This document shows positions 43,607 to 51,129 of a stretch of 64,000 nucleotides of DNA, piece by piece; the first letter of the stretch is position 1, and every line of letters starts with the position of its first letter. The position numbers and the translations under genes are program-made. The notes under the pieces were generated by a model. That model did no database searches and was not told the origin of the DNA. It saw only the letters and a program-made list of their open reading frames with translations. The stretch comes from Zancudomyces culisetae HAW-14-8 (lineage: Eukaryota > Fungi > Kickxellomycota): contig JBNJNM010000012.1 in assembly GCA_052426225.1 (NCBI GenBank), positions 2,294,001 through 2,358,000 on the forward strand. Reading direction: 5' to 3'.

Positions 43607-44227
43607 TTTCTACCGTATTATTGTATATTGGCTTTAGATTGATTATGGGTTGATATATTTATATTTGCATTTCAGGTTTACATTTACAAGCGACACCTTG
43701 ATAAACCACCAAGATCATTATACAAATTCGATAATTTTTTTTTCATTTGCTTTGGTGTGTACCAAGAGCTTGTTGGCTAATACAGATTTTTTTTTCTATT
43801 GCCCATGCTCTATTGGCAGTTTTTAAAGCAACTAGAATTTATAATACGACAATTTTAGCTGCAGAAATATTTGGGTGTATATTTTTTATTTCACTCTTTG
43901 ATTGATAGTATGAAAGCAATTATTATTTTGCTCTTCAGAATAAATATATTATTGCTTCCCCCCCTCCCCGCTTCCCTCACATATCTCTAGATCAAGTAAT
44001 TTAAAAATATTTATTGGCTGTTCACAGTCCTTTTGCGCAAATAATTTATACAATTTAATTTCCACTTTGGTTTTTTTTATTTAAGCAATATAAGGCCAGA
44101 TATTTGGCACAAGGCAAAAAAACCAATTCACTCAAATTTGTTTACAGTTTCAATTAATTATTCATACTTTGGTATTTTCAACCTTGGTGACAAATACTGC
44201 ATCAAACTCATATATACACAACGCACA

Positions 44228-46048: not shown

Positions 46049-46645
46049 TTATGAAATAACATCGGGACCATCCCTTTTAACTTCCCGCACTGGAGCGAAT
46101 AGTGAGTAAGCACAGTTAGGCAAAACCGGCTTGGTTCTATCAGTCTGCTTCCCAAAAGATCGCAAGGCAAAGTTGATGTAGTATCCGGTGCGTGTTATAC
46201 AAAGCTCTATTTGGATATAGTTTGATTCATTTACAACTGGGTATCCATTGTTTTCGTGGTTCTCAACTTCAAATATTGGAAACTCGCAGGTATATCTAGG
46301 TATTCCTTGATATTTCTTTTGAGTGGTGAAATCCCACAATATACTGTCAATCACTTGAACAACGCCATCAGTACATACCCTTTTTATTCCAAATATAGGG
46401 GAGAATTCTGGAGTTACTGAGATCTCGTCTTCATATTTGATCTTTGCGTATCCCAATATCCCAGTATCTCGATGAAAGGGAGTAAGTTGTTCTATTGCCT
46501 TCAGCAATAGATTTTGGCTGTTGTAACTACGATAATCATATGAAATCTTTCTACTGCTTGCTAGCTCAAAAATGTCATCAACAACCGCGTTGACTTTCAA
46601 TATTGCCGATGCAAACAAAACCACTGCTGTAAGAATCCCGTTCAT
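46049..46645 (-). CDS. Orphan small secreted protein A (198 aa, 4 Cys)
   Basis: ATG at 46645 with signal-peptide-like MNGILTAVVLFASAILKVNA. Intronless and colinear with the paralog at 48246-48827. Confidence 0.88.
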   Translation of the reverse strand: MNGILTAVVLFASAILKVNAVVDDIFELASSRKISYDYRSYNSQNLLLKAIEQLTPFHRDTGILGYAKIKYEDEISVTPEFSPIFGIKRVCTDGVVQVIDSILWDFTTQKKYQGIPRYTCEFPIFEVENHENNGYPVVNESNYIQIELCITRTGYYINFALRSFGKQTDRTKPVLPNCAYSLFAPVREVKRDGPDVIS

Positions 46646-48245
46646 TATTCTTTTTCCCACTCAATCCCAAATAGTACCCTTTATTCACTTCTGCTGTTGG
46701 TTGTATGTTTATAGTTTTTTTTTGCTTCTAAGAAGTTTCTACCACATAGGATTATATACAATGTATATATATGTATGTTCAAGAGTATATTGGTTGTTAG
46801 TCAGAATATGGTCGGTTGCTTCTGTATTTATTCTTTTGCGCTTTACTTTGAAAAAAAAAATTTTATACCACTTGTTTCTGCTCACCCCCTGATGTATTAA
46901 TGATATTTATTGACCAGCATACTTGTTATTTTTAATATTCACAAGTTTACCCTGCTTAAAGTGCAGTATATAAGTAACATCCTTGTTTTTGTTGCCTGTT
47001 TTACAAAGTATTATGACATCATTATATATGTACATTTAAAATGGTATGATTATTGCATATTGTTCACTGGATACGTGCTTGTAATTCGCACATGTATATT
47101 CCTTTAATATACAGTTTTACTATGTTTATTAGCTGCAACCTTAATATAACTTGCTTTCATATTTCTACCCAACCCTACCCTCTCACTCTCTCCCCTCCAC
47201 TATTTTGTAACTGTTTTTATTAAGAACAGCAGCAAGACATAGTTTTGTTTTTTTAAGTTTCTTGGTTTTAACTCTTGTAGATAAGCGGGCATTTCCGTAA
47301 AGAGCTCATTTGGATAAAATTAAACTTGAGTTAAGCTTTACTCGCCAATGGTACTAGCACACTCTAAAGCTAAGGAAACAGGACCAAAAAGGTTAAAATA
47401 ATGTTATCATTTATTCTCCATTTTACTGGTTCATTTCATCTGTTGGTTTATTGGTTTATTAGTTCATTAGTTTATTAATTTCCTGGTTCATGTCCTTGCA
47501 ATTCAATATCAAGATGTCTTTTTAATTAAGCATCTTGAAAACCGGAAGTATCTACAGAAATATTGCAGAAAATGGCAGGAAAGTAATAAGACAAAGATAT
47601 AGACAAATAAAGTCGTGAATTGGTAGAATCAAAATACTGATTTCAAAGGCAAACCCTATAGTATCTCTAAACTCATATTACATTATACTAAAAGTTATAC
47701 ATATGTTTGTCGATATTCTCTGGATATTATCGCTTATAAAAATAATGTGCGCCTTTTTGTTCAAGTAAACAGATGGTCACATTATTTGCCACATTACTGA
47801 ATTTGTACGCTAATAATATGGGTAATTACGGCTGAATACCAACCAAACCCAGTAAAACTTGATCTATCATCAATAAAGTACGATTTCTTTACAATCAGTG
47901 ACAATGGTAAAAAAAAATACGCGGGTTTCCTGGGTGTTTGAGATGGAATAATGGGTCCCATTTAAAATATGATATTTTACCAGTTTGATGGCTTTCAACC
48001 CAAGACTCGGATGAGTGTTCGTACCAACATTTCTATTCATTATCCAACAAACTATTGATATAATTTAAAAATGTAGTTTTATTTTTTAGCGATATATATC
48101 AGGACCGTTTGTATTTTGCGGATGCACATTTTAATAAAACTTTAGCAGATATCTATTTTAATATCTAAACTCAATATTTAAATATACAACCACATACATA
48201 TATACATATACACATACACATACAAATTTGTGATAACGAAAGTAA

Positions 48246-48827
48246 ATGTTGCCAGAATTAAGATTATGCTGTTTGATACTTCTTTATTTCGTTACTACCA
48301 CCAAGGCTGTCGATGAAATTTACGAACTAGCCAAACGAGTGCTCACAAATGGCAAAAGTTTGCATTTCAATAGTACATACGCTATTACTAGATCACTCTA
48401 TACATTGAGACCCTTTAATCGTGATACTGGTATACTGGGTTACATCAAAATTCGATTTTCAAATGATAGTGAGGTTGATGACACAAATAAGCAAACCATA
48501 GTTATAAAAGAGGTTTGTACTAACGGCCAAAATATATTTATCGAAGGTGAGGCTTGGAAAATCACGCAGGCAAGACCAAACAACTCCAATGAGTGGTACA
48601 AGTGCATGTACCCCATTTATCCTGTTATGAACAAGGTTTACTATCCAAACACACCGGTATCCAATGAGCAGTTTTTTATAAGAACCGTTTTATGCTTTGA
48701 AAGAGGTAGACTAGAATCCAATGACTCCTTTGTTCGAGTTGATATGTACGGAAGAATAGATAAACCATTCCAAAATAATTGTGCATCTGCTTTGTTTGCA
48801 CCGATAAGACTGAGGCAGCCCAATTGA
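48246..48827 (+). CDS. Orphan small secreted protein B (193 aa, 4 Cys in mature chain)
   Basis: Signal-peptide-like MLPELRLCCLILLYFVTTTKA. Shares PFxRDTGILGYxKI, IKxVCTxG and NCAxxLFAPxR with protein A. Confidence 0.88.
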   Translation: MLPELRLCCLILLYFVTTTKAVDEIYELAKRVLTNGKSLHFNSTYAITRSLYTLRPFNRDTGILGYIKIRFSNDSEVDDTNKQTIVIKEVCTNGQNIFIEGEAWKITQARPNNSNEWYKCMYPIYPVMNKVYYPNTPVSNEQFFIRTVLCFERGRLESNDSFVRVDMYGRIDKPFQNNCASALFAPIRLRQPN

Positions 48828-49224: not shown

Positions 49225-49692
49225 CTAGTACAGCGGAATAGCCTTGAGTGCAATTGAGCCATGATCATTATTTATGGTTGCCTGGAGGGCCTCGTTCTTA
49301 TTCATCAAATCCAGTACCTGTTTGATACAGGATTCAAATACGGCTATTGTTTCGTATTTTTGTTTGCTAAATGCGGTTACCATAAAAACCCAGTTATTTC
49401 GTGAATTCCACACATCATCCAGTGTGAATTCAGAATTAACTCCTGTAGAATATTTCAAGTATATACGCATGTATAGTATCATCCATTTCTCAATAGCATC
49501 CTCTGGAATCCGTTTGAAGTTTTTGTTTACCTTTTCAACAAAAACAGAGTTAGTTATATGGCTATTGTGCTTCTCACTGCTACAGTAAGCCCAGGAGTAA
49601 CTGTTATCACCACATTTAAATCCAAACACAATCAGGATGCTGTATATAAAAGCAATTGTAATTGAATTTATTATTGATATTCTGGCTCCCAT
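49225..49692 (-). CDS. Orphan small protein with N-terminal signal/anchor (155 aa)
   Basis: ATG at 49692, hydrophobic N-terminus, then a helical-looking domain with protein-like composition. No family recognised. Confidence 0.6.
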   Translation of the reverse strand: MGARISIINSITIAFIYSILIVFGFKCGDNSYSWAYCSSEKHNSHITNSVFVEKVNKNFKRIPEDAIEKWMILYMRIYLKYSTGVNSEFTLDDVWNSRNNWVFMVTAFSKQKYETIAVFESCIKQVLDLMNKNEALQATINNDHGSIALKAIPLY

Positions 49693-51129
49693 CCTTTTCA
49701 CTTTTTTACTACTATTTTGTTGCTTGATAGCTCCTGGGTTTCAACACAACGGGATATCTGAGCTGCAATTGCTAATTTTGAAAAACACTGTTATCAAAAT
49801 TGTAATTATATGCTATAGTATATTGAAGTAATAATGATAGAATAGTATGGGACTAGGCAGTGTTTCAGAAAAGTGAAGAGGATATAAATAAATATTTGAT
49901 GGTCTAAACGGTGTTGACAGGCACAAAGTACCTGCGGTCTATACAATTTTGTTTTCATAAAGTGTAGAGTGAGTGGATGTGGATATTTTAACGTATTAAT
50001 ACCTGATCCCCAGAGTGAAGACATTTTCTTTATAAAGACGATTTTTGTTGATAAGCAGCATATAATTAAACTACACTGGGCAAACAAGTATAACCTTAAC
50101 ATCCGAATGCTACTTTTTGTTGATCAAACCAGTTTCTGGAAACCATCCAATGGAAAAGGGGCATCATTTTGAGAAGGAAATCCAAATGAAAGTTTGTTAA
50201 GCTTGAGTAGATACTAGCGAGGTTTCATCAGCTACTTTGAAAAACTACTCAAAAAGTACCTCCAAAGCAACAGCAACATCTCTAGATCCAAATATATACT
50301 CTCTGCGTTCAGCATGGAGCGTCGAAAAAAATGGCGCAATAAAAGTTGGTGTAACAGTAGTAACTATAATCATTGAGGTTTCTTGAGGAAGTATAAAATA
50401 CTGTTCTAAAGTCGTTTATAGACCACAAATTTGCCAATGAAAACAATAGTCAGTTGCCATCATCCCAATCAATCACATTCCTACCCAGCATGCAAACAAT
50501 ACACCCAATACAAAGACAAGATAAGACAGTATGCGTGTCACTATCGCTCGTTTTTGTGTTACGCAGTCCATATTGCAATTCGGTGTTATACTAGAGCTGT
50601 ATCATTTCCACGGAAAAATGCACTAGTAATGTGTTTTTTTATTATATGTTACAACTATTTCTAAGCAACTCTTGGCCAGAAAATGGATGCTTGCTTGTCT
50701 GTTTGTTTGGACTACATTTTTTTAGAACTTTTCTAATATCCTTGCAACCATTGGCTATTTCTAAAATAAGGTTTTGTTTTTGGGGATCATTCAAGTATAA
50801 AGTCAAGCCGTTTTAAAAAAAGAGCCACTTTTTGTAGTAGAAAAAACAAAATAGTCCCAAAATACCAACCGGAAAAATAAAGAAGCATTGGCTTGATTGC
50901 GACGACATCGCAAGATTTTTGTATTATTTTTATTTTTCCATTTCCATTGCCTTTTATATTGTTCTCTTTAGAAATACCAACTACCCTTTAAATCCAAATG
51001 GATGTGGTTAGAAAATCGATAGTTTCTTTTCAAGATTCTCAGCGAATTGCTATTTAAACAGATATTTTTGAGGTTTCCTTGGCAAAATATGCTTGAAAAA
51101 CATCCTCAATAAAGAGCAATTATTTTCAA

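Follow-up and report, generated by a model that had tools for sequence, protein, structure and literature searches.

An apparently species-restricted family of candidate secreted cysteine-containing proteins of Zancudomyces culisetae, a fungus of the mosquito gut, with one head-to-head gene pair among its members

Introduction

Host-associated fungi commonly have lineage-specific families of secreted proteins. The closest described counterparts of the family reported here are lineage-specific small secreted Cys proteins such as the MAX effectors of Magnaporthe and the RNase-like RALPH effectors of powdery mildews, which it resembles in having a signal peptide, fewer than 250 residues and a few conserved Cys residues, as well as in the retention of one structural scaffold even though the sequences share very little identity, the expansion within a single lineage, and the lack of a Pfam domain. 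Two other systems invite comparison. Two-chain toxins, such as the KP6 alpha/beta killer toxin of Ustilago viruses and the bacterial binary toxins, are composed of two related or complementary secreted polypeptides, and this was the model adopted by the sequence-only reading of the locus, which was made before the present analysis. The chains of KP6 are, however, derived from one precursor, and the two genes of binary systems travel together, whereas the members of the present family are mostly solitary; moreover, KP6-like proteins gave no fold match to the models of the two proteins studied here. The likeness to the XendoU/EndoU ribonucleases (PF09412, PF14436), whose catalysis requires two His residues and one Lys, is a weak resemblance in a protein language model and concerns only one of the two.

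Z. culisetae is a fungus of the Harpellales that inhabits the hindguts of mosquito larvae. Members of this order live attached in the larval guts of mosquitoes, black flies, and midges, where a secreted holdfast fixes them to the hindgut cuticle, and to our knowledge almost nothing is known of the molecules with which they interact with the gut. The published genome of Z. culisetae has a size of 28.7 Mb and a GC content of 35.5% (PMC5954228). In the present study, an assembly of 27.1 Mb in 25 contigs was searched, and a stretch of 64 kb (C12:2294001-2358000), hereafter called the window, was analysed around two divergently transcribed genes, A and B.

Results

A and B are diverged paralogs with predicted signal peptides

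The two genes are intronless and face away from each other across a spacer (Table 1), as the sequence-only reading had described, and this structure agrees both with the ORFs and with the public annotation of another strain (GCA_001969505.1), in which the same genes, encoding 198 and 193 residues, are likewise annotated without introns. The eukaryotic start codon of A is the ATG at 46645, while the bacterial-code ORF list extends the frame to a GTG at 46660. Each product starts with a hydrophobic stretch followed by small residues (VNA/V in A and TKA/V in B), with the peak of 9-residue hydropathy reaching 2.91 at residue 4 of A and 2.96 at residue 8 of B. The signal peptides that had been proposed are therefore predicted for both proteins, the prediction being based, here and throughout the family, on simple hydropathy and the -3/-1 rule and not on a trained predictor. 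In the AlphaFold2 model of A, the corresponding region is a low-confidence N-terminal helix lying outside the domain.

Table 1. Positions of the features of the A/B locus, numbered within the window, and of related family members, numbered by contig
Feature	Position	Strand	Basis and remarks
Gene A, intronless CDS	46049..46645	minus	ORF; 198 aa + stop; family HMM E 8e-54
Gene B, intronless CDS	48246..48827	plus	ORF; 193 aa + stop; family HMM E 4e-51
Predicted signal peptide of A	46586..46645	minus	Residues 1-20, VNA then VVDD; putative cleavage site
Predicted signal peptide of B	48246..48305	plus	Residues 1-20, TKA then VDEI; putative cleavage site
Spacer between A and B	46646..48245	.	1600 bp
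TATA-like block + ATACAACCA (TATAAACATACAACCA)	46698..46713	minus	Begins 68 nt upstream of A ATG; 9-mer at -61
Matching block TTTAAATATACAACCA	48177..48192	plus	Same distance from B ATG; 9-mer at -62
Same-strand tandem pairs	C8 176 kb; C12 1.849 Mb; C13 1.734 Mb; C15 0.692 Mb; C15 1.724 Mb
Near-identical copies	C10:1348517 vs C6:1658167; C13:1645064 vs C21:1923952
Near-identical copies	C8:1254703 vs C8:1358751 vs C9:728914; C11:2042403 vs C9:832102 vs C13:1726740

BLASTP aligned A with B over 57 identities in 170 positions (34%, E 6e-26), and the MAFFT alignment contains one internal gap with a length of one residue, in full agreement with the earlier description of diverged paralogs having about one-third identity and a single one-residue gap. 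All of the motifs listed at that time, i.e., VDxIxELA, PFxRDTGILGYxKI, IKxVCTxG, CxxPIxxV, PVxNE, and KPxxxNCAxxLFAPxR, were found in the MAFFT alignment. The four Cys residues of mature A are shared with mature B, as had been noted, and they are invariant or nearly so across the family; B has two more Cys residues in its signal peptide and four N-x-S/T sites. The contrast drawn between an acidic A and a basic B also held (mature pI of about 5.5 versus about 8.9), the calculated values being 5.46 for A and 8.87-8.88 for B, with net charges of -3 and +4, respectively.

The synonymous sites of A and B are saturated. The identity between A and B (31-34%) is close to that between A and its most similar unlinked member, a copy on contig C11 (33%), and the most similar unlinked member of B, on contig C8, is 31% identical to it. 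Grouping of A and B as sisters was neither supported nor rejected by the AU test (p 0.56).

The family has about 37 members in one genome

Genome searches found 25 places with a two-sequence profile of A and B and 42 places with a 23-sequence profile. Intact family ORFs number 36, encode 167-239 residues, and are distributed on 11 contigs; besides them, the genome contains one member with a repeat insert and a few decayed copies. The pair had been regarded as an orphan, which is correct insofar as no known family includes it, but A and B turned out to be only two of the roughly 37 members that this genome contains. The member with the insert encodes 584 residues (C15:966831-968585, minus strand), and about 270 residues of low-complexity repeats, rich in Asn, Ser, Thr, and Ala, interrupt its domain after the first Cys strand; the signal peptide of this member likely starts from an internal Met at around residue 49. 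A hydrophobic N terminus was detected by hydropathy in 33 of the 36 intact members, and the other three are copies disrupted at the 5' end. Within the window, a six-frame search with the 36-member HMM recovered A and B only, the next best match having E>0.5, and a decayed third copy at 49920-50172 was rejected on this result.

In the maximum-likelihood tree, the family is divided into two clades of 14 and 22 members, each with support of 100/100. A and B both belong to clade 1, which consists of 14 genes, and lie inside an unresolved radiation; A-type or B-type subclades that would represent distinct orthologous lineages do not appear in the tree. Members of clade 2 have two extra Cys residues, giving six invariant ones against four. 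As for arrangement, 24 of the 36 intact members are solitary and 10 form five same-strand tandem pairs, one of which consists of sister genes, leaving A and B as the two that are placed head to head. The tandem pairs at C15:691930-693974 and C15:1724073-1725613, which are 1 Mb apart, contain sister genes across the pairs (support 99/97), with the gene order relative to transcription swapped, so that simple block duplication does not account for them.

Recent copies found on different contigs show amino acid identities of 80-99.5% (Table 1). These near-identical copies are recent dispersed duplications or segmental duplicates, and, because several of those located on separate contigs are 90-99.5% identical, duplication appears to be ongoing. 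The trio of copies on C8 and C9, two on the former and one on the latter, is without an in-frame start for a signal peptide, the upstream ATG being out of frame.

The predicted domain has no match among solved structures

No Pfam family matched A or B at E<=1, and nothing was common to the Pfam results of 33 members; the statement of the sequence-only reading that no known family could be recognised is thus borne out. A search of PDB sequences with the family profile gave no match at E<=10. When the family alignment was supplied, AlphaFold2 modelled A with a pLDDT of 83.8 and a pTM of 0.78, and mature B with a pLDDT of 92.2 and a pTM of 0.87. The two models have the same order of elements, in which three to four helices are followed by seven strands together with one short helix, and neither gave a Foldseek match in the PDB at E<=1e-3. 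Comparison with the known structural families of effectors (MAX, ToxA-like, KP6-like, and RNase-like) likewise revealed no fold similarity to any solved member. Within the limits of a fold comparison that covered the PDB and of models that rest on the paralogs of one species, there is a real possibility that the predicted domain represents a fold that has no relative of solved structure.

The columns whose conservation reaches 60% or more among non-redundant members comprise the four Cys residues, Tyr/Phe/Trp, Pro, and Leu/Ile positions, and one K/R-E dipeptide that precedes the first Cys, at the Glu position of which A has Arg. The family alignment contains no conserved set of His, Ser, or Asp residues, and no His column reaches 60%; the conserved columns therefore look like a scaffold rather than an active site. 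The four invariant Cys residues probably form two disulfides. By the operational description used for fungal small secreted Cys proteins, which does not define a class by homology, the family has a length of 167-239 residues, at least four Cys residues, a lineage-specific expansion, and no Pfam domain, and hydropathy indicates an N-terminal signal peptide without a further membrane segment.

Relatives were found only in Z. culisetae

A HMMER search of 1.84 billion representative proteins with the profile of A and B returned 15 hits, each of which matches a gene of this genome with an identity of 98-100%, so that all derive from the other sequenced strain of Z. culisetae. Those matches that carry a name are "hypothetical protein [Zancudomyces culisetae]". 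Word-index protein searches yielded nothing but the query and proteins of Z. culisetae, and a metagenome scan for the family gave no match. The exhaustive HMMER search was run with the two-sequence profile, which very diverged relatives in sister genera could escape; as far as public data show, the family would appear to be restricted to Z. culisetae, the only species in which it has been found so far.

The genes are under purifying but relaxed selection

An 11-kb stretch including the locus is 99.45% identical to contig LSSK01000296.1 of GCA_001969505.1, and between positions 43786 and 54828 of the window the two strains differ at about 0.55% of sites. A shows 0 differences in 597 nt versus about 3 expected, with flanks differing at about 0.5%, and B shows four differences, of which two are synonymous and two are non-synonymous (G36S and K37E). 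Among recent paralog pairs, dN/dS ranges from 0.13 to 0.92. Positive selection was considered and rejected, since wherever dS of a recent pair could be measured the ratio was below 1; the genes are under purifying but relaxed selection.

A and B share a short promoter-proximal block

A and B each have their own TATA-like element, and a 16-nt TATA-proximal block is shared by the two (Table 1). The block contains the 9-mer ATACAACCA, which starts, on the sense strand, 61 nt before the ATG of A and 62 nt before that of B. The 64-kb window contains three copies of the 9-mer, where 0.71 would be expected, and two of the three are those upstream of A and B, while the 400-nt upstream regions of the remaining 34 family members do not contain it. 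The remainder of the upstream 160 nt could not be aligned between A and B, and, apart from the orientation of the genes, the 16-nt block is the only distinctive feature of the pair that was found. Retention of the block despite the saturation of synonymous sites suggests that the duplication included the core promoter and that the element has been constrained. With a TATA-like element at each gene and a spacer as long as 1.6 kb, the pair need not depend on one bidirectional promoter in common; similar regulation of A and B nevertheless seems plausible from the shared block.

Otherwise, the spacer contains no coding remnant related to the family according to the six-frame search with the family HMM, and no tRNA-like sequence or Rfam family above threshold, the Rfam scan yielding only noise at E 0.24-0.58. 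One of these sub-threshold matches, a C/D-box snoRNA-like similarity to SNORD47 at 47383-47447 on the minus strand (23 bits, where the gathering score is 50; E 0.58), is probably noise. Between the strains, the spacer has nine differences in 1600 nt, which is a neutral-looking rate.

Discussion

The observations made in the present study, taken as a whole, are best explained by a species-restricted family of secreted, disulfide-stabilised, non-enzymatic binding proteins that act separately, a reading to which we assign a probability of roughly 0.6. In each product, a signal peptide would be followed by a single compact alpha+beta domain, about 170 residues long, in which three or four N-terminal helices would precede a seven-stranded, mostly antiparallel sheet. 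The family grows by local and dispersed duplication, and its members diverge rapidly but retain a scaffold made up of Cys, aromatic, and Pro residues. The products might bind extracellularly, each on its own, in the lumen of the larval hindgut or at the fungal surface, where they would face the host, microbes, or a substrate. We infer the secretion, the binding role, and the site of action of the products; they are read as non-enzymatic binding proteins because no catalytic-type constellation is conserved, and "non-enzymatic" is in this sense an argument from the absence of conserved polar residues. A bolder view, which can be held only tentatively, is that the unmatched fold is the scaffold of a Zancudomyces-specific secreted arsenal with which the symbiont would engage the larval hindgut of the mosquito or its bacteria; in its strongest version, the pairs of acidic and basic members (A/B and the tandem pairs on C13 at 1.734 Mb and C15 at 1.724 Mb) would encode heterodimers.

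Among the rival explanations, the one with the greatest weight, even if it is considerably less probable than separately acting binding proteins, is that the family supplies structural or adhesive parts of the surface of the fungus (of its cell wall, holdfast glue, or trichospore appendage, for example) instead of diffusible interaction proteins. The predicted signal peptides and likely disulfides would suit such parts, as would the existence of a secreted holdfast in the Harpellales, and the insert of about 270 residues rich in Asn, Ser, and Thr in one member is typical of wall or stalk proteins. Comparative genomics of these gut commensals also laid stress on adhesion proteins (PMC5954228). 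On the other hand, 36 of the 37 members are without a C-terminal signal of the GPI type and without a Ser/Thr-rich stalk or repeats, and the compact globular domains, the diverged surfaces (15-34% identity), and the many recent duplicates suit interaction proteins better, although they are not decisive. Less probable still, and in our view improbable, is the proposal of the sequence-only reading that acidic A and basic B are co-expressed from a bidirectional promoter to form a heterodimeric secreted toxin, lectin, or effector. The adjacency and divergence of the two genes, their opposite net charges (-3 and +4), and the 16-nt motif that lies at the same distance from both ATGs and is unique to them all fit that proposal, and a faint hint comes from the three most basic members, all of which have an acidic member as neighbour (post hoc p about 0.03). 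The recurrence of homologs as divergent pairs had been set as its test, and it failed there, A/B being the sole head-to-head pair among 36 members; 24 of these have no partner within several kilobases, and in each of the five remaining pairs the genes lie in tandem on the same strand, one such pair being made of sister genes. Furthermore, the charge contrast of adjacent pairs does not significantly exceed that of random ones (permutation p 0.29 for the charge difference and p 0.14 for opposite signs), A resembles unlinked members as closely as it resembles B, and the 1.6-kb spacer with a TATA-like element for each gene fits two independent promoters.

It is very unlikely that the proteins are extremely diverged secreted ribonucleases of the XendoU/EndoU type, or some other enzyme or toxin missed by sequence methods. 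In a language-model feature search with A, XendoU/EndoU clusters were the ten best named matches, with scores of 0.76-0.81, but a third of shuffled proteins reach the same range, and the search with B gave no usable match. PF09412 and PF14436 matched none of 33 members, A and B had no Pfam hit at E<=1, no His is conserved in the family, and no EndoU chain was recovered in the fold searches of A or B. The XendoU/EndoU identity was rejected on these grounds, that is, the lack of an HMM match, of a conserved His, of a fold match, and of reproduction with B. Least probable of all is the notion that the ORFs are non-functional leftovers of selfish or repeat-associated sequence from which nothing is made. 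Several near-identical copies do lie on different contigs and some copies are decayed, but 36 full-length frames have kept the four invariant Cys residues and signal peptides at identities of 15-34%, dN/dS stays below 1 in all recent pairs whose dS is measurable, the family alignment yields a confident three-dimensional model, and A shows none of the roughly three changes expected between strains over its 597 nt.

As for the origin of the pair within this family, the head-to-head arrangement of A and B most likely goes back to an old inverted duplication at this locus, and we do not read it as an indication of a two-subunit machine. This view of the origin is drawn mainly from the adjacency of the genes and from one short motif (roughly p 0.005 by our own post hoc estimate). 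The inverted duplication claimed by the sequence-only reading is compatible with both the AU test and the promoter-proximal motif, but the former lends it no positive support. We propose that A and B share the TATA-proximal motif because the duplication would have carried the core promoter along with the coding region.

A family of this category is ordinary for host-associated fungi, and the interest of the present one lies in its being large, predicted to be secreted, and actively duplicating in a poorly understood insect-gut symbiont. With about 37 genes in one species, a confidently predicted but unmatched fold, and ongoing duplication, the family offers testable candidates for the interface between the fungus and the insect or its microbiota, as well as a good target for structure determination.

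Other features of the window

Near the pair, an ORF at 49225-49701 on the minus strand encodes about 155 residues with a hydrophobic N terminus and has no relation to the family by the HMM (E>1); it is not called in the annotation of the other strain, and its 477 nt show 0 differences between the strains. The exon of a CobW/COG0523 gene has only synonymous changes between the strains, whose copies of a PLC gene differ by 8 synonymous and 4 non-synonymous changes.
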